From Mantamonas sphyraenae STR306 (taxonomy: Eukaryota; Protista; CRuMs), in contig JAPMXV010000009.1 in NCBI GenBank assembly GCA_026936335.1, forward strand, positions 62,001-126,000: DNA of 64,000 bases, given 5' to 3'. Of the stretch, positions 9,460 through 32,023 are shown piece by piece. The notes beneath the pieces were generated by a model. That model was not told the DNA's origin, did not search any database, and saw nothing but the letters and a program-made list of their open reading frames with translations. The number at the start of each line of letters is the position of its first letter. The stretch's first letter is position 1. Position numbers and translations under genes: made by a program.

Positions 9460-11686
9460 TCACAACAAACACACATCGTTGTCACAATACTTCTCGCCCG
9501 TGGCATCCTGCCTTCCGGTCGTCTTGATGTCCAGCGGCTTGAGCTTGGAGAGCATGTCGCCGTAGCGTTCAGCGTCAATCTCCTCATAGGGCATCTGCGG
9601 GTAGGCACCTGCGTCGATGTTGGGCAGGAGGGAGACCCCCTTGAGGTGATACTGGAAGTAGTCTAGGGCCTGTGCGATGTGTGGGCCCTCGCGCTCGGGG
9701 TCAAACGTCACCGTGCAGCTCACCTGATTGTCTGCCCAGTGGCGTTGCAGGAACGCTGCCAGACTCAACTGCTCCCACATGCTCACGTCACGCAGGGTGC
9801 GCACGCCCACGCCACAGTCCACAGGGAAGGAGACCACGCTCGTGGTGTCCGGTGCATCCACAGCCGGTTCAACCTCGTAGCCAGATTCAAGAAGCGGCCT
9901 GAGCAGCTCGCTGGCGTTGTTCATGCGCAGGCGGCGGATGTAGTACCTTGACTGAGGATAGTGCATGCCTGGGGTGGCGCCTGCTAGAAGCGACACCGTT
10001 CCGCTCGGTTTGATGCTTGTGCGCTTGATTGACTCGGGTACGCCAAAGCGTGACGACAGCGAGCGGTCACAGTCGCCAACCACGTCGTATCCTTCTTCAC
10101 ACCATTGGCGCAGCTGTTCCAGGCCGTGCTGCGAGATAAACTGTGCCAGACCAGACATGCTGCAGCCAATCCGCCTGTTGCGTGCCATCACGGCGTTTGT
10201 TTCCTCCCAGTGGGTGAGCCCAAGCGTCACCGTCTTTGCATACTCCAACGCCAGCGCGAGGGTCTCTTTGTACTCTTGCAACGAGTCGTGGCGGTTGGGA
10301 AACGTTTCCACCAGGCAGCACAACTCGTACGACTCCAGCGTCTGTTCCAGACAAGGATTGCCTCCGCGTGCACGCTCGTCTTTCCAATCCTCCTCGCGCC
10401 CATTCATACGCGAGTGCGCACGCATGTTGTCCAGCCACGCAAACCCGGGCTCGCCATTTGTGCAGATGTTCTTCACCAGCGGTGCGTAATCCATGCCCAA
10501 ACGCGCAAACACGCTGTTGTTACTGGTCCAGCCGTACTCCATCCGGTGTGGATTCACCTCGTAGTTCTTCAGATTGGCAAACGCCTCGTCGTCGGGCTCG
10601 CCAAAGGCGATTTCTGCCGTCTGCCGCACGTTGCCCGTCACAATGCACTTGCCAATCAGGTTCATGATATCTACAATCGTAGTCGATGACAACGTGCGCC
10701 CCTCCTGGGCGTCCAGCACGCGCTCCAGGTGGACGTGCAGGTTGTGCAAGGACTGCGGGCCCGCTGCCTCGCCACCAAAGCCTCGGATGGGCTCGCCGCG
10801 TGCACGGATGTTGGAATAGTCAAAACGCACAGGTGTGCGTGCAACCTCGTGCGTGTTGAGGTACGCATTCAACAATTGTGCGACGGAAGAGACCCAACCC
10901 TCGCGCGAGTCTGCAATCTGCACCATCTGCGCTGGTTTGCTACGGTCCACACCGTGTACACGCACTGCCTCGCCAGCTCCCTTTGTGTCGAAGCCCACGC
11001 CCACGCCCAGCATGGCCATGTCCATGAGAAAGGTGAACGGTTTGTGCGCCTCGCCTTGCTCCGCCAGGGCTCGCACGCCATCCGTGCTCACAAACGCACA
11101 ATTGTTCAGGGCAGCATACATGTGACGCTCTGTGGTCAGTGCACTGCCCATGGCCCACAGGCCCCTGCCCGGTGGCAGGAATTTCATGTGGAAAATGCGA
11201 TCGTACATCGCCTGCGCAGCCTCCTGCTTCTCGTGAACATCAAACGCTTTGCCAGCGCCCTCCATCCACTCCTGCTGCATCTGGTACGTGCCGTTCACCA
11301 CACGCTCCACCGTTTCGTGCCTTTAGCGTGGTCCGCGCAATTGTGTCAGCGTCCTGGGTCCGTGCGCGTCGGGCGATGTTCTCGGGAACCGGCCTCCGCC
11401 GGCATCTTTCCGTCTGCACTCACCACTCCTCGTTGCGGCCGTCTGGACGCACGCGACTGTATGTGCGCCTGTACACCAGTTCGCCCAACCCGTTGAACCC
11501 AAATGGTGGCGACTCTGCTGCATAGGACGACACAAACGAGTCGTCGAGGCGAAAGCCTCCTCGCTCGCCCACCGCTGCATCGCTCAAGCCACGCACACAA
11601 TCGACTAGTGCACGTGCAACGTATCCACTACTCGAGGAGTTGCCTGTGCGAGCCAGCGAACGTCCTGCTCCGGCACGTGCAAACAT
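9460..11686 (-). CDS. nrdJ: Class II (adenosylcobalamin-dependent) ribonucleotide reductase, monomeric RTPR/NrdJm type, with presequence-like N-terminus
   Basis: FLPPGRGLW, NNCAF, GGNPCLEQ (thiyl-radical Cys), ELCCLVE, IKPSGTVS, WADNQVSCT and C-terminal CDNDVC. Intron 11423-11321 splits the W codon of EEW|HETVERVVNG. Confidence 0.96.
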
Positions 11687-11700
11687 ATCTGGAGCAAGCA

Positions 11701-14700
11701 ATGGCTTGGCGTATCCGGGGGGGTCCGCAGGTCACCATCCAGCTCATCCTCACGGTGTTCCTGCTGCTCCTTCTGCTCCATCTCCTGCTCACAAGGCTGT
11801 ACAAGTGGTGGATGCGCTACCAGGGTGAGTGTGTGTCCACGATTCACTCCATGACCATCCTGCACGGGGCTCCCAAGACTGACGTTAGAATTCTCGCGCG
11901 CGACAGATCGGCTGCGAGTCATCCTACACAGCGAACAGCTGCATTCACTGTACGAACGTATGCACTCACGTGGGATTACTTCACAGAGCCTGGCTGTGCT
12001 CACGCGCGCAGAGCAGTTGCACCTGCTGCACGAAACTTGGGGTTTGGACGAAGCCAAGGCGCGCCGCGTCGTCGCCCAACTCGTCAACGCCGGCGACGAG
12101 CCACAGGATGCTCGCAAACGCACACACACCACGGATTCTGCACATTCAACCCAATCCGCAGCCAATCGCTCACGCATGGCTCGTCATGCAGACGCCTCGG
12201 TGCTTGGCACGCTTCCGTGGCAGGCGGCCGCTGCGCAACGCAACCAGCCAAGCCGGCCCGACCGACCCTTTGCCCTCGGTCACCCGCCACCTGTCCACCC
12301 TCTGCTGCCTCACATGTACATTCAACCTGCAGGCATTTCCTCTGGCTGGCAATACGCTCTAAATGCCTCGGCCACAGAGTGGTGCCGGCCGCTCAATGCC
12401 TTGCTCAACACCCGCCGCGGCGGTGCCTTGTTCCTCGGCGTGGACCCACACACACACCATGTGCGAGGCCTTCCTCTGCCGGATATCACCCAAAAAGCCC
12501 TGTGCACACACATTCAATCGCTCCTTGACACACACTGTCCTACGGCCGTGCCTCGCCCCTGCGTCGGAGCGCCCCAGACACGAATCCATCTGGCTCTGCA
12601 CCCTGTCAAGCTGCCTCAATTCACCCTCGTGTGTGGTTCGCAGACCTTGGGCTTGGTGTCACACACGGTGGTGCTGCACAACCAACAATGGTCCCACACG
12701 GTGGCCGAGTGCACAGAGATTGCCGAGCGCAACTTTGTCCCCGGCGCGTCGTCGACACCATCGTCATCATCGTCGTCCTCCTCGCGATCAGCTGCCCCTG
12801 TATCTACCCCTGAGTTTGAGCTGCTGAACAAGAACGGAGTGCGTGTGGTGACCAATGCGCAGGCGTTGGAACGCGACATCCTCTTTGCTGTGCCCGTTCT
12901 CTCCGACCTGTCCTCCGAACAGGCCACCCAACTGCGTGCCCACATGCTCCAAGTCATCCAATCGTATGGATTGGACCCATCCTCGCTCCCTCTGGCTCCT
13001 GTGGCGGCCACAATGGCCGTCGACGACCACAACGCATTGCCACTGTATGTTTTGGAGCTCACAGTGCGGGGCAACGAGGCCCATGAAGCGCCTGTACACA
13101 TTCTACACACACACACATACCATCTTCAGGGACATTCAGTTGCACCCATCGACTCGTCCTCCCTGTACAGCGCCATTCAACGCGGATGCACACTTGCCGC
13201 TTCCCTTCCCCATTCCCAACAACAGACCAGCACCACCAGCCGTGTGTACATCCACACCCACACACGCGTACAACCAATGCATCAGATTGTGATGGCCAGG
13301 CCCACAGATGCCAGGATTGACATGGCGTCGGGATCTGGACAAACAGTGGATCCGGAGCGCTTGGCTCACAGTGTGGCACACGCCATGAGCGCCCTGCTCA
13401 ATGATGCCCTTCTGCACAAACGCACCCTTCGCTCGCGTGCCGTCCTCCTTGGCGTGGTTTCGGCCGACGACGGGCGCAGTGCACGAGCACTTGGCTTGGC
13501 CTTGGATTCCACACAGATGGATGCGCTGCAACAGCACAGCGAGACTCTGTTGCAACGCATGGTACCTAGCAATGCGCAAGCTGTGGTCGATGTCACCTGC
13601 TATCCTGTATCCTGTCCTGTGGCACATCTGGTGCACGATGACTGCGACGGGGTGGGCGTGTGCGTTCTGCGCATTGTCGACGACAGCTGCCTCGACGCCA
13701 TCGTCGACGCAGTCGACACTGTGTTGCATGGAACTCCGGCTCTGCGTACAGAGCTTTGGATGGACAGCGTGCAACGCCACGGCTACGCAAGCGCGTGCGT
13801 GCTGAGGCTGGCCAACGAGGAGAACAGCAGCAAATGGGACGCTTCTGCCGGCGTTTCGTCATCTTCATCGTCATCCCCACCGACAACGACTCAAACTCGT
13901 CTGGCCGTGGCTGTGGCTCCGACCGGCGGCGTCGGGGATCAACAGGCACAGCAAATGGTGCGTGAACGTCTGCGAAGGGTTTGTACAGAGTGGACGGACG
14001 CCTGTGTTCTCGAAACAGTGCCTCTGGATGCGGTGCAATTTGCCCCGCGCTGGATCTTCACCGTGCGGCTGGAAGAGGCACGCTGGCCAAACGATCAACG
14101 CGCATTGCTTAGTGTGCACCCGCCGCAGGCGTTTGGGTTGTCAACCGTCACTGCCGCCACGATGGAAGATCCGAGCGAAAGTTTGGTCAGCTTGCATGCC
14201 AGAGACGTGCAAGCACGTATCCGTGACTGCGCTCACGTGCGCACGCAGCATTTGCTCGAAACCGAGCTCAAAGACGAAACACAGGCTCTATCCGAGGCGA
14301 TGCATGATGTGTGTGTGAACACGCATGGACAGGCACACAGGCTACTGGTGCGTGTGGACGCCAGGAGTGATGCCGATGTGTCTCTCGCTGCGCACGCGTT
14401 GGCGCGACGGCTTGCTGGACCTGGGTCCATGGCGACAGTGGTGCCCTGTTTTGGCACGCTGGACACGAGCACAGCCATGCTGCAAGCCATCCACACGCTG
14501 CTGCCGGATGCGACGGCTGAGGCACCCGCCACGGAACACCAGCTCAGCGTGGAGTTTGGGCTGGCCATGCGCATGGCCACAACAAATCACACCCCGCAAG
14601 GCGGAGGAGAAGAGACACAGATGGCGCCTGTGGTGCTGTTCACAAACGTGCCATCGACGTGGACCAGGGAACACTTTGAAGTTATGATGGCCAACACGGA

Positions 14701-17700
14701 TCGCCTCGTCTGCATCTGCACGGGACAGAGCATGGACGCGGACATGCAAGGTGCCATGTACACCTTGGCACAGGTGGATGCCACAGATGACAATGCTACA
14801 ACACACGACTTGTCGTTGCTGCAGTCCGTTGTCCAGCAAGTGGTCCAGGCAAACATGCTGGATCAAGCCACTGCCGACGAGGCTGCCGCTTTCATCAATG
14901 ATGATGTCAAAGACGACGATGATCACGATGGGAACTCATACACCATTGCTTCATGCATGCGTGTGTTGCGCAAGGCAAACATGGCCCTGGCCGACACGCT
15001 TGCTTTGGCCCTGATGTACGGGGCACCTGTGAGTGCACGCACCCTTGCCGACAGTGAGGCAAAAGAAGAACGGATGACGCAACAACTGCATCAACTGCAG
15101 GCCATGGGTCTGATGCAACCGCAGAGTCGTTTGGATGACACCTGGTCCGCACACAGTTCACTTCTGCTGAGTGCCAAGGCAATCCCGTTGCCAGATTGGC
15201 CCGCACGCACGTTTGTGCAACGCCACGTGACTCTGGCATCTTCACTTCGGCGCACGTACATGAGCAGCAAGTGGCAGACGGCGGTGTGGGCAGTGCGGGA
15301 GCACAGGCATGCGTTGTGGCGCTCGGTGGGCATTGCAAGCCGCATGGCACTCTGGGACGAGCATGCACAGCTTCTGGACGCGCTGCATCCGTTGTGGCCG
15401 TACGCTCTGACGCCACAGGAATGTGCGCAGCGCTGTGTGGCCGAAGCACAGCACTTGGATGCTCAGGATCACAACCAACGGGTATCTCTGGCCTGGTTGC
15501 ACCTGCAGGCGGCCACTGCACAGGTGAATGCCTCCCAGTTGGAAGACGCCCAGCAGTCCGTGCGTGTGGCACAGCGGCACGCAGAAGACGCCAGCGCCCA
15601 TCGTTTGGGTGCCTTGATCGCTGGCGTCGGCGCCCTGGTGTGGCGTCGCCGAGGCGACTCACAGCAGAGCGGCACCATGTTGAATGAGGCACTGGGCACA
15701 CTGGACAGCAACTCGCAACCTGTTTCACAGCTGGTGCTTGTGCTCGGCATGCATTTGGCGCACGGCACACTGGAGGACTATTGGGCGCCTGATGAGGCGG
15801 TGGTGCGGTGTGAGGAACTGCTTGCGCTGTGTGAGAACATTGCTTTGGGCCCATATCATCCTCTGGTGGCCCAGTGTCACGCTCAGCTCGCTCGTCTGCA
15901 CGCTGAAAGTGACTCTGCACAGTCGCGTTGGGCCGCCCTCGCTTCCTGGGAACACGTGCTCCACGTCCATTGGCGTTCGCGTGGCCACCGCCATCGAGAC
16001 TACCTGCACGCCCTGTTGCACGCGGCACGAGCACGTGTGGCCGTACGGGATACCCTGGGAGCCCTTTGGCTTGCTGAACAAGCGCGTGGGGGACTGTTGT
16101 TCTGTTACGGCCCACGCCATCACGTTACCATCGAGTCACATGTGTTTTGTGCAGAGCTTTGTGTGCGTTTGATGCCCCTGGCCAACCAGACGGCGCAGGA
16201 AAGCGAACGTGTGCGCCTTCACGCTATCCAACTCCTCCACACTGCCAGCAAGGCCACACGGAACCAACGTGGACTGATGGCCCATCCACAGTATCGCATG
16301 GCTCTATGCCATCGTCTGTGCCATCTCTTTGCCGAAGTGAGAGAATGGGAGGCTGCAGCGTGGCACGCCTGGGAAGCGCGACTCAGCGCAGGAAGTACGC
16401 CAGCATACGAACGTACACGAGACAAGCTGAAGAAGGAAGGCAACCCTGATATGCACCTCTACGCCGTGTGTTTGCACCAATGTGGCTCGCGACAGCTTGG
16501 ACGCACCCTGCTTCGTGACGAAGCGCGCAGCTTGCGCTCGCAGGATCCCACAGGTAGTGTACGCATGCACGTTGTCGCCCTGGCTCTGTGTGATCGACCC
16601 GAGGAGCAAGCGGTGGAGGAAGTGGTGACGCAGATGGAACAATGGGGCGCAGATGCAGACGACACACAGACACAAGCCATGGTGGAGCTGCTGGAAGTCC
16701 TGCGATTGTCTTCACCACCGGCAGAACAGCAACCGCAGCAGCAGACGACGACGGGTCACGTTGCAGCGGCTGCTGCACGAGTGCTGCGTTGCATGCGTCC
16801 GCTCCTGCGAGACGACAACGTGGAGTTGCAATCCATCTTTTGGATGCAGACGGCGTTGCAGCAGGCGCACGCAGGGCTGTGGGCCAAGGCGCACAGTGCA
16901 TTGCATCATTGCGTGCAATTGGACACACAATTGTACGGAGACGACGCTCATTTTGTGTTGCAGCGTCGCCTGGAGGGCATCCATGTGTTGCTGCGGCGAG
17001 GCGAGGATGTACAGGCCGAGGCACAACTGCGTGAGCTTGTGGAACGGGTGCGTGTGTCAGGCGACGACGACGGCAGTGTCCTCGTGTGGGTGCATGCTCA
17101 ACGCATGCTTGGACTGCTGTACCGGCGCATGGGCCAGTTGGAAGGAAGCGAAGAACGATTGCGACATGCCAAGCACGTCAGCGCAATGCGGTTCGGTGAG
17201 CTGCATCCACTCACAGTGGCCATGGCCGACGAGCTCTCGAAGCTGTTCATGCAGTGTGGCCGATATGCAGAGGCCCTGGAGCAGCTGGAAGGAGTAAGTG
17301 TCATGAGCGAACGGCAGATGATGGCGGTGCAACACGGCCACCGTGCATGGAGCGCCCTTGTGGCCACCGATGGCACCGAGGACACGTTGCACTTGGCCAA
17401 TCTTCTACTGGCGGCAGCGGAGCTTCACAGCGACCAGGGCGATGTGGACGCCGCACAAATCGATCTCGATCGCGTCCAACAGCTGCAATGGCAACACACA
17501 GAGAATACTGAGATGCAACGTCGTATCGATGCTGTGCGTATCAAGCTGGACTTTCTGCGCAACGAACGCAGGGCTCACCTGGAGTCGGAGAAAGAGGCAC
17601 ACCTGCGCGAGCTGGCGGCTGCTGAAGAGGCACATGCAAAGGAGGAGAAGGAAGATGAGGAAGAAGAAGAGGCTGAAGAGACGACGGCATCTCGCGTGTC

Positions 17701-18925
17701 TGCAAGTGTGCATCATGCCATGCTGGAAGAGAGCATGGAGCTGGAGTTGGACGATCCCGTGTTGCGAAACAGCGACGAGGACGACCACGACATGGATGAC
17801 CGCGGTGGGTACAGCAGCACCGACAGCAGTGACATTGACGATGGTCCCCTGTCTGTGCTCCACGTGGCTACGGAAGCGGGTCACGTAAGCGACGAGGAGG
17901 GGGAAGACGCTGCACAGCGTCAACTCCATGATGAAGACGACGTTGACAGCGATGATCACGAGTTTGCCGCACTCAACACAAGTTGGGAACAGCTCATGAG
18001 AGACCAGCAGCAGGAACGAGATGAGGATCATGCCTTGAACGTCTCTGCCGCATCCGCCGTGTCGCTTGCGTCCACCATTTCGCAGGTGTCTGTGAAAACG
18101 CAGACCGAGGATGTGGATGCGCCACGTCATGTGCAGCACAGTTCGGACGAGGCATTGCCTGTCATGCCAGAGATGGATTTGGGGACGGGCCGTCAGCAGC
18201 AACCATGGGCCGACACGGCGCCATCTGCGCTGAGTCCCATCCGACACGTCTCGTCTGCGTTGGAAACCAGCACGGGCAGCACAGGCAGCGCAGGGAGTTC
18301 ACACAGCACACGCAGTACAACGAGCGTGCACTCTGCAACCAGTCCAAGTACGTCGTACAACCGACTGCAGCTGCAACTGGGTGGCCAGGACACAGGGCGA
18401 CGTAGCAAGCGCAATGTTTTCATCGAACGACTGGACAACGACAACGACAACGACGAAGATGACAACATGCTGGGGCCGTGGAGTACGCGGTCCTCGCCCA
18501 GCAGTACCTCGTCGTCATCTACAAACACCTCACGGCACAGTTTGCTGAGCCACGGCAGCAATGCGCCTTCTGGCTATGCCCGTGGACCGCAGATGAGCGA
18601 CGACGTACGCAAACGCGAACTCGCGCGCGCACAGCGTCACAAGCCCGGGAAACTCCTCGACGAAGCCGGTATCGGCGTCACAAAGTCCTGGGGCAACATG
18701 ACACGGCTGTACGACAATGCAGGTGGCGGATCGGGACGCAGGCATCGCAAGAGAGAGGGTTCGCGAGGAGGTCTTCATCGCAACTCGTCTCCCACCACCA
18801 CCAGCACTTCTTCTCTGCATTCACCCCACAGGCAGCGCACACACCGCAGCTCAGGCAACAATCTCACAAAGGTCATCATTGAAGTGGATGGAGAAGCGAT
18901 GGAGTTTCGACGAGAGCGCAAGTAG
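11701..18925 (+). CDS. About 2380-aa NLR/STAND-like protein: TM, SAM-like, two Schlafen/AlbA_2-like domains, degenerate NB-ARC-like module, TPR repeats, acidic disordered tail
   Basis: Exon 1 (11701-11824) and intron 11825-11906 splice in frame to the 2321-aa ORF. Motifs: LNALLNTRRGGALFLGVD, SALLND...VLLGV, and kinesin-light-chain-type TPR turns LGPYHPLVA and FGELHPLTV. Confidence 0.7.
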
Positions 18926-19078
18926 AGAGCAAACGTTGGTTTGCCGTGCGCGAGAAGGCTGGAAGAACGAAGGGAGCAATGAAAGAGTATATGAGACCAC
19001 AGGAATATGTGTGCCAAGAGGTTGTGACACAAGTTTCTGTGCTTGCCTTCATCGTCACCAACAAAAAGGCCAAAAAAA

Positions 19079-20554
19079 ATGCAATATGCCAACTTGGACG
19101 AAGAAGACTCGGGTCGCGGTGACTCGAGTCGGTTTTGGTCTGGATCATCGGTGTCATCCATGAAAGAGACACTGTCACGACGTGGTGTCATCCAGAAAAT
19201 CATTGCCGCGGTGTTGGTGGCCGTCCTGGTCGTTGGCCTGACACTGGTGATTGTGTTCAGCGGTGGAACGCATGCCATGGGGGCCAATGGATCGTCTGGA
19301 GACGCATGGACCAAGGCAACAGCTGTGTTGGAGCAGGGGGTCACGGACAAAGTCTTTCCCGGGGCTGCGGCGCTCATTGCTTGGAATCAACGCGCCACGA
19401 CCAACGTTGTGTATTCCCAGTCTGTGGGGCGATATACGTATGACGCTTCGTCGCCCGAGACAAGCACAGAGACAAGCTTGTTTGACCTGGCGTCGCTGAC
19501 AAAGGTTCTCGCCACGACGACGGCAACCGCGCAGCTTTATCAGGCGGGCCACCTTGGCTTGGACGACCATGTGGACGCAGCTCATCTTCTGGGTCCCGCG
19601 TTTTCCGGCCAGGGCAAGAATGCCATCCGTGTGCGTCATCTGCTGCTGCACAACGCAGGCTTTCCTCCAGATCCCGTCCCGGGCTACTGGCAGCCTGCCT
19701 TTGGCTGTCCGGAGACTAGCAAACCGCATCCGGCCCAGAACTTCTCCTGCCAAGGACAGATCTTCGATGGATTGATGGCACAGACCCTGGACCATGCGGT
19801 TGGGGAGAAATACGTGTACAGCGATTTGTCCATGATTTCCATGGCACTCGTGGTTGGCACAGTCGTCAAGAACAAGCAGCTGGTGTCTGTGAGTGATCTG
19901 CGACCAGGATGTCCCTACAATGCAGCCAAGGGTGGCCAATGGTGCTGGTACGAGGCGTTTGTGCGCAAGAACGTGCTGGAAGCGAGCGGAGTGGGCCAGC
20001 ACACGGGGTTCATGCCCAGCAAGTCTGTGCGTGACCAGTGTGTACCCACATGGAACGACACGGAATACCGCCATGCTCAGGTGCAAGGACAGGTCAGCGA
20101 CGAGAACGCTTTCGCCAGCGGCGGGATCCAAGGTCACGCTGGCCTGTTTGCCACTGCCAAGGATGTGTTGGCGATCATCACACACAACTGGTGGACTCAA
20201 CACAGCAAACATCACAATCCCAACGCGTACGCGCTCAACAGCACCACCATCTCACTGTTCACTCGTGTGGCAAACTCTTCACAGAGTTCACGGGCTCTCG
20301 GGTGGGACACCAACGATTACGCTCACCACTCTGTCGGCGGGCGCTTCTGTGGCAATTTTAGTGCGGCCACTTTCACACACAGTGGGTACACCGGCACGCT
20401 GATTTGTGCTGATCCGGTTTCCAACCTGGTCAGCATTTTGCTCACGAACCGTTGTTTCCCTGCCAAGACAGCCAACATCCACAACGTGGGCGTGGTGCGC
20501 CACAACTTTAACAACCAAGTGGAAACGATTGTGACAACGTTGTTCAATCAGTGA
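19079..20554 (+). CDS. Beta-lactamase-related serine hydrolase (class C/AmiE-EstB-like) with a type II membrane anchor
   Basis: FDLASLTK (SxxK), YVYSD, GQVSDENA...GHAGLF and FTHSGYTG motifs; one N-terminal TM helix. Confidence 0.9.
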   Translation: MQYANLDEEDSGRGDSSRFWSGSSVSSMKETLSRRGVIQKIIAAVLVAVLVVGLTLVIVFSGGTHAMGANGSSGDAWTKATAVLEQGVTDKVFPGAAALIAWNQRATTNVVYSQSVGRYTYDASSPETSTETSLFDLASLTKVLATTTATAQLYQAGHLGLDDHVDAAHLLGPAFSGQGKNAIRVRHLLLHNAGFPPDPVPGYWQPAFGCPETSKPHPAQNFSCQGQIFDGLMAQTLDHAVGEKYVYSDLSMISMALVVGTVVKNKQLVSVSDLRPGCPYNAAKGGQWCWYEAFVRKNVLEASGVGQHTGFMPSKSVRDQCVPTWNDTEYRHAQVQGQVSDENAFASGGIQGHAGLFATAKDVLAIITHNWWTQHSKHHNPNAYALNSTTISLFTRVANSSQSSRALGWDTNDYAHHSVGGRFCGNFSAATFTHSGYTGTLICADPVSNLVSILLTNRCFPAKTANIHNVGVVRHNFNNQVETIVTTLFNQ

Positions 20555-20561
20555 GCGCACG

Positions 20562-23500
20562 TCACTCAAACGAAAGCCGCGTGCCAACACGAGCACCACG
20601 GTTGCGTGGCGTCGCAGCACCTGGTTGTGCCTGATGACGTTTGGAGGGCGAAAAGTGGTGTTGCTGTGGGTCCATGTCGGACACACTGACCTGCTCCACG
20701 CCCATGTCGGCCACAAACTTGGCGTCCACAAGGGCGGTTCGACGATCTGCGCTCAGCTCGGACAGCGATTTGCGCGAACGAGCCGAAGCTGCGCTGTGTG
20801 AAGAAACGATGCTCAACAATGACTCGTTGTCATCATCGTCTGCGTCATCATCGTCTTGGAACACGGCGCGCAGTTGCAACGTCGGTGTGGGGGCTGCACG
20901 CTGAGCCCGGAAACTGCTGTTGCTTGTCAGATTGGCGTCCAGGCTCAACGGTCGAAGCGTTTGCAGCGACGACATCACACTCGATGACGCTGCACTTGGG
21001 GACTCGGGAAGAACCTGACCAAGGGCTGCCTGTTGCTTGCGGGCTGTGATCCGTGTTGGTTGCGCAGCAGACGGCATTGCTTCTCGTGCTGTCGTTTCGA
21101 TGGGTTTGGGTCGCTTCTTGCGTTGCTTTTGCTTTTGCTGCTGCTGCTGCTTCTTGTTGTGTGAGGCAGAGACCGGTGTTTCCTCGGGTTCCCTGCCTTG
21201 GCGGCGGGTAACCTCTGCAGGCAACTTTTCGGCAGCGTTGTAGTCTGGAAACGAAGTCTGGTCGTCGTGGGGCTTGCTGTCCAGCCACATGATGAGCAGA
21301 CCGAAAAGGAGAAGTTGAGCAAGCACCAAAGAAGCCTCAAGCAGGCTTTGCCTGCACGAATACACGGCCACAAACAGGTAGGAGCCGATGGTCATGTTGG
21401 CAACAGCTGAAAGGGCCAACAGCTTGTTGTCAGTACCCACGGTCACGAAAAGGAGCACCGAGACGAGCTGGGCACCCACAAGAGCCGTTCCCATGGCGCG
21501 CATGGTGGGCGTGCAATCAGTTGCTTGTATCCACCCACTGAGTGCGCGATGTGCACCGTTGAAGAGGTCCGGCAAACGCTGGACAAAGTCGAACAATGCC
21601 CCAAACACCCAGCGGCCAGTGTTGGAGAGTTGGCTCATATCACGTGTGTTGGGTTGAGTGCTTGTGGCAGCGTTCTTGTTGCCCAGTTCCTGCTCCTTGC
21701 GCTCCGCATCACGACGTTCCTCCTCCTTGCGTTCATGCTCCTTGCGCTCCGCATCACGACGTTCCTCCTCCTTGCGTTCATGCTCCTTGCGCTCCGCATC
21801 ACGACGTTCCTCCTCCTTGCGTTCATGCTCCTTGCGCTCCGCATCACGACGTTCCTCCTCCTTGCGTTCATGCTCCTTGCGCTCCGCATCACGACGTTCC
21901 TCCTCCTTGCGCTCCGCATCACGACGTTCCTCCTCCTTGCGTTCAGCATCACGACGCTCTTGCTCCTTGCGTTCAGCATCACGGCGTTCCTGCTCCTTGC
22001 GTTCATGCTCCCTGCGTTCCGCATCACGACGTTCCTGCTCCTTGCGTTCAGCATCACGACGTTCTTGCTCCCTGCGTTCCGCATCACGACGCTCTTGCTC
22101 CTTGCGCTCCGCATCACGACGTTCCTCCTCCTTGCGTTCATGCTCCTTGCGCTCCGCATCACGACGTTCCTCCTCCTTGCGCTCCGCATCACGACGTTCC
22201 TCCTCCTTGCGCTCCGCATCACGACGTTCCTCCTCCTTGCGCTCCGCATCACGGCGCTCCTGCTCCTTGCGTTCAGCATCACGACGTTCCTCCTCCTTGC
22301 GTTCAGCATCACGACGCTCTTGCTCCTTGCGATCCGCATCACGACGTTCCTCCTCCTTGCGCTCCGCATCACGGCGCTCCTGCTCCCTGCGTTCAGCATC
22401 ACGACGTTCCTCCTCCTTGCGTTCAGCATCACGACGCTCTTGCTCCTTGCGATCCGCATCACGACGTTCCTGCTCCTTGCGCTCCGCATCACGACGTTCC
22501 TCCTCCTTGCGTTCATGCTCCTTGCGCTCCGCATCACGACGTTCCTCCTCCTTGCGCTCCCGCATCACGACGTTCCTCCTCCTTGCGCTCCGCATCACGA
22601 CGTTCCTCCTCCTTGCGCTCCGCATCACGGCGCTCCTGCTCCTTGCGTTCAGCATCACGACGTTCCTCCTCCTTGCGTTCAGCATCACGACGCTCTTGCT
22701 CCTTGCGATCCGCATCACGACGTTCCTCCTCCTTGCGCTCCGCATCACGGCGCTCCTGCTCCCTGCGTTCCGCATCACGACGTTCCTGCTCCTTGCGCTC
22801 CGCATCACGGCGCTCTTGCTCCTTGCGCTCCTGCTCCTTGCGTTCCGCATCACGGCGTTCCTGCTCCTTGCGCTCCGCATCACGACGCTCTTGCTCCTTG
22901 CGTTCCGCATCACGACGTTCCTGCTCCTTGCGTTCTGCATCACGACGTTCCTGCTCCTTGCGCTCCGCATCACGGCGCTCTTGCTCCTTGCGTTCCTGCT
23001 CCTTGCGTTCCGCATCACGGCGCTCCTTCTCCCTGCGTTCCGCATCACGACGCTCTTGCTCCTTGCGCTCGCGTTCCTTCCTCTCCTGCTCTGCCCTCTC
23101 TTTCTCCATCCTCAATTTCTCTCGCTCCTCGTTCTCCCTTTCCCGTTCAACCCGCTCGCGTTCCTGCCTCTCCCTCTCCTCCCGCATCCGCACCTTTTCC
23201 ATGTCCTCTTTCACCCAAATTTCCACCTCCACTGCTTGCCCCCCCAGCTGCTCTCCACATACGGATGCATCCACCTCCACTCGCACTTGAACGCGCTCGT
23301 TCCCGTTCGGACACTTCACTACCAGAGCCCTCATCGACTCCTGCAGCCCGTGCAAAGTCTTGCAACGCACGATTCGCTTCTTTTCGCTGTGTTCACACTC
23401 CTTTCGCACTGCCTTCGGCCTCACCCACCGTACCAGTCCCCTTCCTTCCAACACAGATGCAGACGCTTCCCACCACTGCGCTCCCACCTTGCGTCCCTCC

Positions 23501-26500
23501 ACCTTGAGCCCTCCGATGCGCACTTCCTTGCCCTCTTCCCCCACCAGCCGCTTCTCCCCTTCCATATCAAGCTTCAGCGGCCCAAACGACTCTCCAAAGC
23601 ACATCTGCGTGCATCCGCTGCTATTGAGACGTCCACCAAATCCATACTGTCCACGATCACCCACAAACACACAAACGTGTGCTTCCTCGCCGCTCTTTGC
23701 CATTCTCTCAAAGTCTTTGGGCTCCACATGGACACGCATCGTCTCCAGCGCTCTGTTCACGTGTGGCAGTGTTCCTTCAAGGCTCACATGATGGTCGCCG
23801 TCCTCGTTGTGCACCGTCACTTCCGAAGAGTCTCCAATCACCAGCGTACCTGCTCCTGCACTTACTCGCACGTCCACGTCGACCTTTTCGAACGCCTCGC
23901 TGCCCAGATCGTCGTCACTCACACGCACACGCGGCAACAGCACGCGCCGGCCTCCTCCACGCACATCCACTCTCTCTTCACCCCACTCCACCTTGGGTGC
24001 ATGGTTCACACGCACCACACGCATCCCCACGCGAACCCCTGGTCGTCGGTCCCCCTTGTGCTTCTTCACTTCATCCGAATCCAGCACCTCGACCTCCACC
24101 ACATCCAAACCAGTCCAATCCTTCGGCGCTCTGTACCGTAGTCCACCCAAGACCTCGTTTACAGACACCAGTGGGCCGTAGAACTGCAGCCTCTTGTCAC
24201 CCTCTCCAGTGCCTTTCACCAGCTTCACGCCTTTGTGTCCTCCCGCCAGATATACCACACCTTCATCGCACACCACGCGTACATACAGTCTACCATCTTT
24301 CGTGTGCACTTCTTCCACATGCAGTCCTTCCAAAGGCACCGTCGCTGCCTGCAGCACGCGCACCTCGCCGTCCAGACCCTCGCTGCGTTGACCAACCTGG
24401 ATGGTCATCGACTGCTGGCTCTGACCCATGCTGGCATGCGACACACGAACACCCAGAGCCGCACGACCTTGATACCCACTCGCTGGCACAAATTGAAGCG
24501 TGCCCACCGCGTTGCGCACCTGAGCCAGCGTTCCACGCACCAAGCGCCGTTCCAGGCATTTGTCGTCGTTCAACACCAGACAACCATGCGAACACACCAT
24601 GCGTACTTCGAATGCATCCTCTCCCGCGTGTTCGGGTGTGTTTTCGTGTCCGATGGACACGGCGCCACGCACAGGCCTTGTCGGGCGGTCCATATCCACC
24701 TGCCAAACCCCATGCTCATCCACACCCATCCCCAATCGCACCCAGGGCGCCTTTACAACATACTCAACATCAATATCCACGTTAGCCGAGGCACGTGCAA
24801 TCTCACGCTCACGGCCGTCCGTGCACATCCCGTTGTCCTGCACCTCCACACGCATCTTGGCCTGGCCCGTGAATCCGGGGCTAGGGACAAACACGATTTC
24901 ACGCTCAAGCACGCGTCGCATCAACGACGCACGGCCCACCATGCGCACACACTGTTCGCTGTCACGTGCCACTTCCGTCACCTGTGCGCTCTTTCGCTTC
25001 TTGGCCAATTTTACGACTCCGTGCGAGGCGCAGATCTCCACAGTGTACTTGCTCCCCTCGATGCGCGCTTCCTTGTCCTTCAGTTCAATGGCAGGCAATG
25101 TCAGCTCGCTATCCGCTTCCATCGAAACCTTGCTCTTGCTCACAACCACTTCCGGCGCAGCGTTGGCTTCAAACACATGCAGTACAGTGCTTGCATTCGT
25201 CCAAACCACAGACTTGGACCGTCCGCACCACGAATCAGCCACAGCCATATGCACCGTCACCGATCCGGGCTGCGCTCCACCAGGGATCACAGAAACCTGC
25301 TTCACAACGGTTTCCAAAGCGTTCAACTCTCCCGAGAGCGACAGGGCAGACCTATCGTCGGAGCGCACGACATGAACATTGTGAGACGACACCACACGGC
25401 GACGTATCAGCAGCTGCCCTTCTGACACAGAGACGTGGAGCGAAAACGGACAAGGCTTGCCAGAGACAACATCCTCATCCGATATGACCACACTATCCAG
25501 TGCCCAAGGGGAGTCTGCACGCACCCACGCCTCTGCTGGCATTTCAACCACCGTCGGGCTGTTGGGTTTCTCCACCTTCACCGGTAGCACGCTGCCTACG
25601 CCTCCAGGGCACGACGCGTTGCACGCGCAGCCGTGCACGTGCACCACCACCTTCAACTCGCCAGCTTCCTTTGCCTCAAAATACACAGGGAGACTCATAA
25701 GGTCCCGTACCTCTGCAAACGAGCCCTGCACCGTCATCGACGTGGAGCCGGCAGACCCACCTTCAACGACATTGTCATTCTGCACAAAAGGGCGCAACAG
25801 CCCTCCCTTGGCCACCAGTCGTAGGCAAACAGTATCCACGACAGGCAATGCGGGGTCCTCCACGTACCATTCCATCCCGTTCAGATCAAGCTCCTCGCCG
25901 ACAAAGCCGGTGGGTATCGTCTCTGTCTGCCTTCGTACTTTTGGTGTCTGAGGCTCGACCACACGTACCCTGAGCGTCCTCTCTGTTCCCTTCACCTTTG
26001 ACGGTTTGCCCATCACTGCCACGCTCACTCCACCCTCTCCAACACTCCCGCCCACAAACACGAGCCCGCCCAGTGCCTCTTCCACCTTCTCCACCGGCCC
26101 GGCGACAACCACGCGTCCACCTCGCTTTCCACCCAGTATCACCTCATCTCCCTCTCGCTCGCACAGCACGCGCACACTCGCCTTCTTTTCGCTCCCGCGT
26201 ACAAGTGCCACCTCCACCTTCACCTCCTCCCCGACACGTCCCATCACCACCTCCGCGCTCACCACAACCTCGGGTCCCACAACCACATGCTCCACCTCCA
26301 CTTCCCCTCTCCACACGCCGCACAGCTCACTCACTCCCTCTTCCATCTTCCCCGCGTATCCTCCGTCACACACTTCCACACTCACGTTCACCATCCCCGC
26401 GCATCCCTTTCCACCCTTGTACTCCACACCCTCGTGCACCCACCTCTCCACCTCCTCATACCCACCGCGTGTCATCTCTCCATCCTCGACCTTTCGCCCA

Positions 26501-29500
26501 TCCACACGCACACTTCCGCAGCTCACATTCACACGCAATCCGTACGCGTCACTCGTCGCGTTCTCTGCCCCTTCGTTCTTCTTGCCCCAGTCCACATCGT
26601 ACATCTCACACCCTTTCAACGCCACCCACTCCCCGCTCACCACCTTTTCCAACCCATCCTTGCACACAACCACAGGCTCGTCGTTCACAGCCTCCACCGC
26701 AATCACCATCTTCCCTTCCCCGCTCTCTCCCTCCTCATCCGTTGCACGCACCGTCATCGTGTCTCGTCCGTTCCAATACAGTGCCGGGTGGTACAGCACC
26801 GTCTGCAGTCGCTTGTTCACCTCCTTCGCTGTCCCGCGCATTCCCAGCACTCGTCCCTGCACCTCTTCCTCTGCACTCACATCCTTCCCCGTCCATCCCA
26901 CAAGCTCAATCACACTTGCGTTCCCACGCTGCATGCTCAGCTCTCCTGCCTCCACGCTCATCTCCACCGTCACCACACTATCCACTCCATCCACGTCCGA
27001 CACCACCAGTCCAAACATGCCCAGCGTCTCGTCCTCCACAACCCTGCTCACTGCCACCTCGCCTTCCTTCGTCTCCTCGTCTCCAGACGGCATAAACACG
27101 CGCGGGGCGTCGTTGACCCCTGCCACCATCACCACCACACTGTGTTTCGCTCGCCCACCGCTCTCGTTCTCCACCATCACCTCCATGCTCGTGTTGCCCG
27201 CAAAGTCCATCTCCGGGTACACACGCATCGTCTGCAACACCCGTTCAATCGCCTCCAGCGAGCCCTCCACAGCAACCTGTCCGCTCTTGCTTCCGTCACC
27301 AATCACAAACCCCACGCCTTTCCCCGCGTCGCTGTCCACAGTCATCTCCACTGCTTCTCCGTGCACGTGCAGTGTGTAGTTCTGTGTGCCCACCACGCCG
27401 CGTCCGCCTGGTGCTGCCCGTTCGCTCAGTTGCACCTCTACGAGACCAAACGGCGTGTCCTCATCCGTCTGCATCACCCCTCGCATCCGCATCTGTACAT
27501 CCACATATCCAGGCAGTACATGCACTGCCACCGTCTCCTCTCGTCCCTGCTTCGCAGGATCATCTCCTCGCGCCCACACACGCATCCACAACGCTTCAGC
27601 ACCGCTGTACCCCCGTTTAGGTTCGTACACCAGCTTGTCCAGTACACTGGACACATGATCCACCGTGCCTTGCGTCCCAACCTTGCGTCCCCCTTTGCCC
27701 GCATTCAGCAACCGCCCGTGTTTGCACCACAGCCGCACCTCCAACACACCCTCCCCATCCCCGTACTTCACTCCAAACAGTGTGGACACTACCACACTGT
27801 CATTCAACATCACCGGCAAGGCGTCCTCACCAACTCGCACAACCACAGATGGCGGCTCGTTCGGACGAACGCGTACCCTCAGCGTCCTCTCTGTTCCCTT
27901 CACCTTTGACGGCTTGCCCATCACTGCCACGCTCACTCCACCCTCCCCAACACTCCCGCCCACAAACACAAGCCCGCCCAGTGCCTCCTCCACCTTCTCC
28001 ACCGGCCCGGCGACAACCACGCGTCCACCTCGCTTTCCACCCAGTATCACCTCATCTTCCTCTCGCTCGCACAGCACGCGCACACTCGCCTTCTTTTCGC
28101 TCCCGCGTACAAGTGCCACCTCCACCTTCACCTCCTCCCCGACACGTCCCATCACCACCTCCGCGCTCACCACAACCTCGGGTCCCACAACCACATGCTC
28201 CACCTCCACTTCCCCTCTCCACACGCCGCACAGCTCACTCACTCCCTCTTCCATCTTCCCCGCGTATCCTCCGTCACACACTTCCACACTCACGTTCACC
28301 ATCCCTGCGCATCCCTTTCCACCCTTGTACTCCACACCCTCGTGCACCCACCTCTCCACCTCCTCATACCCACCGCGTGTCATCTCTCCATCCTCGACCT
28401 TTCGCCCATCCACACGCACACTTCCGCAGCTCACATTCACACGCAATCCGTACGCGTCACTCGTCGCGTTCTCTGCCCCTTCGTTCTTCTTGCCCCAGTC
28501 CACATCGTACATCTCACACCCTTTCAACGCCACCCACTCCCCGCTCACCACCTTTTCCAACCCATCCTTGCACACAACCACAGGCTCGTCGTTCACAGCC
28601 TCCACCGCAATCACCATCTTCCCTTCCCCGCTCTCTCCCTCCTCATCCGTTGCACGCACCGTCATCGTGTCTCGTCCGTTCCAATACAGTGCCGGGTGGT
28701 ACAGCACCGTCTGCAGTCGCTTGTTCACCTCCTTCGCTGTCCCGCGCATTCCCAGCACTCGTCCCTGCACCTCTTCCTCTGCACTCACATCCTTCCCCGT
28801 CCATCCCACAAGCTCAATCACACTTGCGTTCCCACGCTGCATGCTCAGCTCTCCTGCCTCCACGCTCATCTCCACCGTCACCACACTATCCACTCCATCC
28901 ACGTCCGACACCACCAGTCCAAACATGCCCAGCGTCTCGTCCTCCACAACCCTGCTCACTGCCACCTCCCCTTCCTTCGTCTCTTCGTCTCCAGACGGCA
29001 TAAACACGCGCGGGGCGTCGTTGACCCCTGCCACCATCACCACCACACTGTGTTTCGCTCGCCCACCGCTCTCGTTCTCCACCATCACCTCCATGCTCGT
29101 GTTGCCCGCAAAGTCCATCTCCGGGTACACACGCATCGTCTGCAACACCCGTTCAATCGCCTCCAGCGAGCCCTCCACAGCAACCTGTCCGCTCTTGCTT
29201 CCGTCACCAATCACAAACCCCACGCCTTTCCCCGCGTCGCTGTCCACAGTCATCTCCACTGCTTCTCCGTGCACGTGCAGTGTGTAGTTCTGTGTGCCCA
29301 CCACGCCGCGTCCGCCTGGTGCTGCCCGTTCGCTCAGTTGCACCTCTACGAGACCAAACGGCGTGTCCTCATCCGTCTGCATCACCCCTCGCATCCGCAT
29401 CTGTACATCCACATATCCAGGCAGTACATGCACTGCCACCGTCTCCTCTCGTCCCTGCTTCGCAGGATCATCTCCTCGCGCCCACACACGCATCCACAAC

Positions 29501-31839
29501 GCTTCAGCACCGCTGTACCCCCGTTTAGGTTCGTACACCAGCTTGTCCAGTACACTGGACACATGAACCACCGTGCCTTGCGTCCCAACCTTGCGTCCCC
29601 CTTTGCCCGCATTCAGCAACCGCCCGTGTTTGCACCACAGCCGCACCTCCAACACACCCTCCCCATCCCCGTACTTCACTCCAAACAGTGTGGACACTAC
29701 CACACTGTCATTCAACATCACCGGCAAGGCGTCCTCACCAACTCGCACAACCACAGATGGCGGCTCGTTCGGACGAACGCGTACCCTGAGCGTCCTCTCT
29801 GTGCCCTTCACCTTTGACGGTTTGCCCATCACCGCCACGCTCACTCCACCCTCCCCAACACTCCCGCCCACAAACACAAGCCCGCCCAGTGCCTCTTCCA
29901 CCTTCTCCACCGGCCCGGCGACAACCACGCGTCCACCTCGCTTTCCACCCAGTATCACCTCATCTCCCTCTCGCTCGCACAGCACGCGCACACTCGCCTT
30001 CTTTTCGCTCCCGCGTACAAGTGCCACCTCCACCTTCACCTCCTCCCCGACACGTCCCATCACCACCTCCGCGCTCACCACAACCTCGGGTCCCACAACC
30101 ACATGCTCCACCTCCACTTCCCCTCTCCACACGCCGCACAGCTCACTCACTCCCTCTTCCATCTTCCCCGCGTATCCTCCGTCACACACTTCCACACTCA
30201 CGTTCACCATCCCTGCGCATCCCTTTCCACCCTTGTACTCCACACCCTCGTGCACCCACCTCTCCACCTCCTCATACCCACCGCGTGTCATCTCTCCATC
30301 CTCGACCTTTCGCCCATCCACACGCACACTTCCGCAGCTCACATTCACACGCAATCCGTACGCGTCACTCGTCGCGTTCTCTGCCCCTTCGTTCTTCTTG
30401 CCCCAGTCCACATCGTACATCTCACACCCTTTCAACGCCACCCACTCCCCGCTCACCACCTTTTCCAACCCATCCTTGCACACAACCACAGGCTCGTCGT
30501 TCACAGCCTCCACCGCAATCACCATCTTCCCTTCCCCGCTCTCTCCCTCCTCATCCGTTGCACGCACCGTCATCGTGTCTCGTCCGTTCCAATACAGTGC
30601 CGGGTGGTACAGCACCGTCTGCAGTCGCTTGTTCACCTCCTTCGCTGTCCCGCGCATTCCCAGCACTCGTCCCTGCACCTCTTCCTCTGCACTCACATCC
30701 TTCCCCGTCCATCCCACAAGCTCAATCACACTTGCGTTCCCACGCTGCATGCTCAGCTCTCCTGCCTCCACGCTCATCTCCACCGTCACCACACTATCCA
30801 CTCCATCCACGTCCGACACCACCAGTCCAAACATGCCCAGCGTCTCGTCCTCCACAACCCTGCTCACTGCCACCTCCCCTTCCTTCGTCTCTTCGTCTCC
30901 AGACGGCATAAACACGCGCGGGGCGTCGTTGACCCCTGCCACCATCACCACCACACTGTGTTTCGCTCGCCCACCGCTCTCGTTCTCCACCATCACCTCC
31001 ATGCTCGTGTTGCCCGCAAAGTCCATCTCCGGGTACACACGCATCGTCTGCAACACCCGCTCAATCGCCTCCAGCGAGCCCTCCACAGCAACCTGTCCGC
31101 TCTTGCTCCCGTCACCAATCACAAACCCCACGCCTTTCCCCGCGTCGCTGTCCACAGTCATCTCCACTGCTTCTCCGTGCACGTGCAGTGTGTAGTTCTG
31201 TGTGCCCACCACGCCGCGTCCGCCTGGTGCTGCCCGTTCGCTCAGTTGCACCTCTCCGAGACCAAACGGCGTGTCCTCATCCGTCTGCATCACCCCTCGC
31301 ATCCGCATCTGTACATCCACATACCCAGGCAGTACATGAAGCAGTATGTCTGCCCTGCTGCTCACGACCACGTCCGGCAAGAACGTTTCGCTGTTGTTTG
31401 TCATTTCCACGTCACTTGCCTTCTTCTGCAGCAGCTTCACGCGCACTTTGAGCTCTTCTGGCCCACTGTACAAGCGCTCTGGTTCGTACACCAGTGCTTG
31501 CAGCACTGCGTGAACCTCTTCCAGAGTCCCTTCCATCCCCACGTTGCTGCCGCCGTTCCCTTTTGCGACAAGTTGCCCGTGCTTGCATTTCACACGCAGC
31601 TCCAGCGTGCCGGTGGCTTGCTGACACGTCACAGCAAACATACCCGCAAGCGGAAATGAATCGTTCAACAGAATGGGTTGTTCTTCCAATGCTACTGTAC
31701 TCTTGACCACCAGCAGCGGCGTCGTGTCTGCGGCTTGTGAACTCTCCGTGCTCTCCCCGATGCAGAGAGCTGCACACAGCACCCAAACCGTCAGCAACAA
31801 CGGACTATACGCGGTCCATGCAGTTCTTCGCACGTGCAT
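20562..31839 (-). CDS. Giant surface/adhesin-like protein (about 3760 aa): signal peptide, Ig/cadherin-like repeats, charged repeat stalk, 3 TM, cytoplasmic tail; one apparent frameshift near 22560
   Basis: ATG 31839 gives MHVRRTAWTAYSPLLLTVWVLCAALCIG. Repeated GTxxxVNxxLxxLxYxP...VNDAP/VNDEP motifs. Removing the extra C at 22559-22561 joins ORFs 22534..31887 and 20562..23048. Confidence 0.82.
21691..23070 (-). repeat. Coding minisatellite, 30-bp unit (15-bp subunits) encoding ERKE(Q/E/H)ERRDA
   Basis: Tandem tcctccttgcgctccgcatcacgacgttcc-type units over about 1.4 kb. Confidence 0.97.
25964..31338 (-). repeat. Near-identical intragenic tandem repeat, period 1908 bp (636 aa), about 2.8 copies
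   Basis: The same sequence starts at 25964, 27872 and 29780. Shadow ORFs also recur at +1908. Confidence 0.97.
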
Positions 31840-32023
31840 GGGCCAACGAATCCTGTCTGAGATGAAAATGTGGCAGCGCCTGCGCACGCAAGCCCAACCT
31901 TTTCCGTTCTCTCCTGTTCGTTCCTATCACACCTATCGAAGCATCCAAGCCTTTTTGCCGGGTGTATGTCTTTGCAAGCATACTCACATCGAATCTGCAC
32001 CCACAGTTTCTGCCCTCTCTGCC

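Follow-up and report, generated by a model that had tools for sequence, protein, structure and literature searches.

A Mantamonas sphyraenae protein with the probable domain order of SAMD9/9L and apparently dismantled Schlafen and STAND sites

The 64,000-nucleotide stretch of Mantamonas sphyraenae DNA analysed here (the window, to which positions refer unless another contig is named) contains a gene whose predicted product would combine a membrane anchor, a SAM-like domain, two AlbA_2/Schlafen units, a pseudo-STAND region and degenerate TPRs (Table 1). An earlier reading made from the letters alone (the sequence-only reading) had proposed an immune receptor or a dead derivative of one. The dead derivative is the better option, as Schlafen and NTPase residues are lost; since both AlbA_2 units lack the Schlafen catalytic residues, a working effector receptor is unlikely. 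The best reading, put forward tentatively, is that the protein would act within the Mantamonas NLR network as a membrane decoy or brake devoid of enzyme activity. Its immune role, its partner and its mechanism are what we infer from the comparisons below.

Table 1. Features of the gene and of two genes discussed with it. Some domain edges are approximate.
Feature	Position	Strand	Remarks
Class II (B12) ribonucleotide reductase (RNR)	9460..11686	-	Head-to-head neighbour
Exon 1	11701..11824	+	41 codons; ATG and Leu-rich signal-anchor/TM segment
Signal-anchor/TM segment (probable)	~11731-11790	+	Leu-rich, flanked on both sides by basic residues
Intron (predicted)	11825..11906	+	GT-AG, 82 nt; GTGAGT donor at 11825
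Exon 2	11907..18925	+	Frame unbroken up to the stop
SAM-like domain (probable)	11909..12090	+	Top Atlas match; pattern fits by eye
AlbA_2/Schlafen unit 1	12314..13165	+	N-half ~12323-12610, insert of ~130-140 aa, presumed C-half ~13040-13165
AlbA_2/Schlafen unit 2	13265..14242	+	N-half ~13290-13600, insert of ~150 aa, presumed C-half; collinear with unit 1
Pseudo-STAND region (probable)	14255..15190	+	Atlas, block ranks, chain test
Putative pre-P-loop helix	14270	+	
Putative P-loop strand-helix	14342	+	Walker A Lys replaced by Val at 14378, glycines gone
Putative Walker B strand	~14630	+	Without acidic residue
Putative sensor strand	14702	+	
Putative winged helix	15071	+	
Putative degenerate MHD	15140	+	
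Helical arm	15191..15420	+	Comes after the winged helix in AfsR-type STAND-TPR proteins
Degenerate TPR solenoid	15421..17500	+	Partly of kinesin-light-chain/TPR_12 type
Charged helix, then tail	17501..18925	+	Acidic, Ser/Thr-rich, low-complexity, ~450 aa
Intact AlbA_2-NB-ARC-TPR gene	contig C1, ~202185-206190 (L012:3185-7192)	+	1335 aa, C-terminal TM

Gene structure and genomic context

The gene itself is real. Between 11855 and the stop at 18925, one frame runs open for 2356 codons, a length in which base composition predicts about 77 stops; the other five frames contain 36-50 stops each. All the motifs that the sequence-only reading quoted after the leader lie at their positions in this one open frame. 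The hydrophobic leader that it described is also present, but it sits in a separate exon 1 and not in the same frame as the rest. Sequence signals predict a two-exon gene encoding about 2380 aa when the acceptor at 11906 is used. Three in-frame AG acceptors (11888, 11906 and 11918) are available to the donor, and 11906 is preferred because its distance from a branch-point-like motif around 11879 equals that found in the intron of the neighbouring RNR gene. Splicing of another candidate, a 96-nt in-frame intron at 15029-15124, would delete the best winged-helix match, and this candidate was rejected for that reason. Searches were run with each exon separately.

The TM leader of exon 1 is probable. 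The alternative that it is merely a translated CT-rich UTR is disfavoured by the coding-like periodicity of the exon (GC of 0.61/0.34/0.85 by codon position) and by the good context of the ATG at 11701 (A at -3, G at +4). A second ATG is found at 11812; a start there would bypass the TM segment.

The start codons of this gene and of the RNR gene are 14 nt apart on opposite strands (window 11686-11701). Thus, the 5' UTRs either overlap the partner's coding sequence or are nearly absent. The neighbourhood is of housekeeping type (RNR, Fcf2, MORN), outside the NLR clusters and away from the contig C1 gene of Table 1. Directly downstream lies an intronless gene (19043-20554, +) for a serine hydrolase of the beta-lactamase family that has a hydrophobic segment at its N-terminus. 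At 20562-31887 (-), a very long repeat protein is encoded, divided between two frames that overlap within a charged minisatellite (~22550-23050).

It is highly improbable that the gene is a decaying relic, under relaxed selection and with little function. Such decay would agree with the loss of every catalytic motif and with the GC3 of exon 2 (0.64-0.65), lower than that of RNR and MORN (0.74). However, 7 kb are free of any stop or frameshift and the splice signals are intact, at a divergence that hides any paralogue; under neutral decay, the frame would have been interrupted much earlier. From a long frame kept open at such divergence we infer selection on a non-catalytic role.

SAM-like domain and tandem AlbA_2 units

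The SAM domain suspected at the start of exon 2 is probable: in Atlas, a language-model comparison, its best match is a SAM_1/SAM_2 cluster (0.90, 161 shared features), but neither Pfam nor PDB sequence searches gave a match over 11909..12090.

For the two AlbA_2-type motifs, a specific HMM was built from 29 independent sequences. With this model, motif 1 scores 20.8 bits and motif 2 scores 4.8 bits (best shuffle 4.2), values that none of 1000 shuffles equalled in either case. Glocal profile comparison against shuffles gives z of 3.8-6.0 over both units and of 3.8-4.3 for motif 2. That both units, in which the sequence-only reading had seen AlbA_2-type motifs, carry an AlbA_2/Schlafen N-half is therefore confirmed at the level of profiles, although neither unit reaches the Pfam cut-off of PF04326 (AlbA_2), for which the contig C1 gene scores 47.3 bits. 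BLAST aligns unit 1 with unit 2 over 218 columns (20% identity, E 0.003; shuffle z 2.1), and by sequence the two are a tandem duplication, each split by an insert of 130-150 aa. The C-halves are visible by eye and in the alignment of the two units past the inserts; they fall below significance, with pLDDT < 50. Fold predictions of the inserts have pLDDT < 45.

SLFN11 requires E209, E214 and K216, and members of the family in which one of them is missing are nuclease-deficient (PMC9482658). In unit 1, these positions are occupied by I (12335), Q (12350) and A (12356), respectively, and that of D252 by P. In unit 2, they are occupied by T (13304), D (13319) and A (13325), and that of D252 by S; an Asp is found one residue off E209 and two Asp lie 2-3 residues beyond D252.

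Pseudo-STAND region

The sequence-only reading had also listed elements in NB-ARC order. Their order and spacing are modestly above chance, but HMM and hhalign comparisons are negative and structure prediction is of low confidence. In Atlas, segment 14195-15760, a query that took in about 170 aa of arm and TPR, reaches 0.96 against AAA_16, AAA_22 and NB-ARC STAND(-TPR) clusters (recognition 3517), a level attained by about 1 in 100 shuffled proteins. An alignment of 129 AfsR-type and Mantamonas STANDs then served as the source of blocks. Of 1950 positions, the top-ranked one is 14342 for the masked P-loop strand-helix block, 15071 for the winged helix and 15272 for the arm, and these follow the expected order. 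The best chain of ten blocks falls unprompted on the motifs of the sequence-only reading, and is equalled by 8-11 of 300 shuffles (p ~0.03), or by 1 of 300 when the GLPLA and MHD blocks are dropped post hoc. GLPLA is unrecognisable. As the MAFFT alignment placed the STAND out of register, this domain was folded from the single sequence; the AlphaFold model has a pLDDT of 44, a level at which fold searches are meaningless.

Taken as sequence evidence, these data make a STAND ancestry of 14255-15190 probable. The competing view, a fusion of AlbA_2 and TPRs with an unrelated alpha/beta domain in the middle, is very unlikely. It would account for the failure of Pfam, HMM, hhalign, glocal profile and pairwise alignment to the contig C1 gene to match a STAND, for a chain of NBD blocks alone that is no better than shuffles, and for an Atlas match obtained with arm and TPR in the query. 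It is at odds with the score of that Atlas match and the nature of the clusters at its top, and with three separate blocks ranking first at the expected order and spacing.

The previously noted loss of GKT/S and of the Walker B Asp holds. In the register of the chain, other residues stand in place of the Walker A glycines and Lys and of all Walker B acids, which makes nucleotide binding unlikely. The GG[T/S] P-loop with an upstream His, of SAMD9 type, is absent, no glycine being found at any Walker A position. This bears on the possibility of an active SAMD9-like effector with rebuilt sites, whose AlbA units would pack like Schlafen lobes, with the acids of unit 2, and which would need no canonical P-loop. 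In its favour, unit 2 has an Asp at the E214 position (Avs9 has E14 and D19), besides those near E209 and D252, and in SAMD9, too, the Walker A Lys is missing (PMC5445408). Nevertheless, neither unit retains E209 or K216, inserts divide both AlbA domains, and the loss of the P-loop glycines goes far beyond the SAMD9 variant. Rebuilt sites are thus improbable.

Arm, TPR solenoid and tail

Beyond the arm, whose block at 15272 is the top-ranked position within the protein, TPR identity is confirmed by sequence: as proposed earlier, TPRs are present, with TPR_12 above its Pfam cut-off (30.8 bits for a cut-off of 30.1) at ~17100-17290. Weaker Pfam TPR matches are found at ~15800-15900, and PDB sequence matches are to Podospora and kinesin light chain TPRs. 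In the tail, hydrophobic residues fall to 17-20 per 100, and no sign of an OB fold and no Pfam match were found at 17501-18925.

Homologues, copy number and the intact gene of contig C1

The M. sphyraenae genome (25.06 Mb, 78 contigs, GC 59.19%; PMC10492846) was searched as the assembly of 25,061,354 bases in 78 contigs. At E 0.01, the gene finds only itself and is thus single copy. A search of 5.8 billion clusters, in which 8000 candidates were scored and protein length was limited to 0.55-1.75 times that of the query, gave no homologue, and neither did phmmer with the SAM-to-STAND part (11906-15244) against 1.84 billion representatives. Pfam and PADLOC searches for AlbA, SAM, NB-ARC and the inserts gave nothing over cut-off. 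As no close kin were found, the domain calls depend on profiles built from independent sequences.

The sequence-only reading had suggested a search for paralogues with intact motifs. No paralogue was found, but an intact AlbA_2-NB-ARC-TPR gene exists on contig C1, whose only significant sequence link to the pseudo-STAND gene is generic TPR similarity. It retains E/E/K at the E209/E214/K216 positions and the Walker A/B, GLPLA and MHD motifs. The best matches of its STAND are bacterial HTH- and SARP-type STAND-TPR proteins (~30% identity). AlbA_2-like sequence was found at just three places in the genome, namely in this gene and in units 1 and 2, the latter two matching the model by construction.

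Comparison with known systems

The sequence-only reading did not recognise the domain combination. In fact, the putative SAM, the AlbA_2 units, the putative STAND and the TPRs follow the order of SAMD9/9L, in which SAM, AlbA_2, SIR2, P-loop NTPase, TPR and OB domains succeed one another, the N-terminal SAM being a feature of the vertebrate members (PMC5445408, PMC12680541). Very large size and a non-canonical Walker A add to the likeness. In contrast with SAMD9/9L, the Mantamonas protein has a probable N-terminal TM and two insert-split AlbA_2 units, and its nuclease residues are lost. The SIR2-like domain is absent, unit 2 (to ~14242) filling the space before the putative STAND (~14255), and a low-complexity tail stands where the C-terminal OB fold would be. 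PDB, 5.8-billion-cluster and 1.84-billion-representative searches gave no match to SAMD9 proteins. With neither SIR2, OB, SAMD9-type P-loop nor homology, the Mantamonas protein is, by sequence, an analogue of SAMD9/9L and stands outside the family.

AlbA_2 domains are associated with defence in bacteria and animals (PMC12680541). Bacterial Avs9 has a SAMD9-like layout, argued to be convergent, and depends on its AlbA_2 active site (PMC12680541). Avs9 and other Schlafen-sensor fusions (PMC12680541, PMC13056530) probably share with the Mantamonas protein an AlbA_2 effector joined to a STAND/TPR sensor. Avs9-type proteins are catalytically active and cell-killing or anti-phage, whereas the Mantamonas protein is eukaryotic, intron-containing, probably equipped with SAM and TM, and apparently dead at both sites.

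The order of STAND, winged helix, arm and TPR_10/12 is that of AfsR-type proteins, of fungal NB-ARC-TPR NLRs and of the contig C1 protein. In these, Walker A/B, GLPLA and MHD are intact, but they are lost in the pseudo-STAND protein. The contig C1 protein also has AlbA_2 and a TM, but with the TM at the opposite end. A 2014 survey of fungal NLRs mentions neither AlbA_2, SAM nor TM.

Function without catalysis has precedents. Plant sensor NLRs work without a P-loop and keep a helper repressed, and RRS1 and RGA5 carry integrated decoys (PMC9528088); the nuclease-dead Schlafens SLFN5 and mouse SLFN2 function without nuclease activity (PMC9482658). Unlike these, the Mantamonas chain would have both modules dead at once. 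Moreover, plant pairs are genetically linked head to head and have recognisable NB-ARC motifs, while the Mantamonas protein has no linked partner.

In the literature searched, no publication on Mantamonas NLRs or on such a protein was found, and the published accounts of AlbA_2+STAND+TPR concern animals (SAMD9) and bacteria (Avs9, SAMD9-like proteins). One intact and one apparently enzyme-dead version in a CRuMs protist would extend the design to deep-branching microbial eukaryotes.

Possible function

It can be proposed that the gene is an old member of the NLR family (effector-STAND-TPR), the nuclease and ATPase sites of which were dismantled while fold and frame were retained. The N-terminal anchor would tether the protein to a membrane, the SAM domain may mediate self-association, and the protein would work without catalysis inside a large Mantamonas NLR network. 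As a decoy or sensor, its dead Schlafen domains and TPRs would serve to bind either nucleic acid or an anti-Schlafen factor from a virus. Alternatively, as a brake, it would keep the membrane-anchored AlbA_2-NB-ARC-TPR protein of contig C1 inactive. Several observations argue against either role. The surroundings are housekeeping and, unlike plant pairs, unlinked to the contig C1 gene or to NLR clusters; the gene is single copy with eroded, non-variable TPRs; and a significant sequence relation to the contig C1 gene beyond TPRs appears to be lacking.

The main rival, nearly as likely though itself doubtful, is an exapted housekeeping scaffold of NLR ancestry, a non-immune, membrane-bound RNA/DNA-binding or cargo adaptor, perhaps co-regulated with RNR via a shared promoter. 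The single copy, the housekeeping neighbourhood in which the RNR start codon is 14 nt away, the disappearance of all enzymatic motifs, the kinesin-light-chain-like TPRs with a long acidic tail and the absence of recent paralogues fit such a scaffold. However, the lack of any homologue in the two large database searches speaks against a conserved eukaryotic function, and the full effector-STAND-arm-TPR order is retained. We keep the decoy or brake as the tentative preference.

A bolder version of the decoy or brake reading, which we consider unlikely, is a third independent SAMD9/Avs9-like tRNase defence organised as a two-gene system, with the contig C1 protein as executor and the doubly dead, membrane-bound protein as sensor or brake. 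If true, paired-NLR and integrated-decoy logic would not be confined to plants and would occur in a lineage close to the Amorphea root. The pair offers a test of antiviral translation shut-off in protists and of its control by a decoy or brake, and the intact contig C1 gene is the easier experimental entry.

Other NLR-type genes of Mantamonas

In the genome, at least 19 matches to NB-ARC exceed the Pfam cut-off, and CHAT, SH2, ankyrin and TPR are among the partner domains of its NB-ARC/STAND modules. On contig C21 (20253-21791, -), SAM_1 and AAA_16/STAND matches over cut-off lie about 300 aa apart, seemingly within one open frame of 2005 aa, a possible intact SAM-X-STAND relative. An SH2 module occupies the sensor position in a CHAT-STAND-Cbl_N2-SH2 protein (L020:5291-8485, -) and in a STAND-Cbl_N2-SH2 protein (L021:2338-4539, +). 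Other architectures include a protein that combines two STAND domains with TPRs (L013:1960-9120, -) and an ankyrin-IQ-NB-ARC protein (L016:5520-9707, -). No SAM was found upstream of the CHAT-NB-ARC-TPR genes examined. CHAT-NB-ARC-TPR genes form an expanded family of closely related members on contigs C51, C67, C68, C72, C73 and C76; on C51, the TPR array exceeds 14 kb across two open frames.
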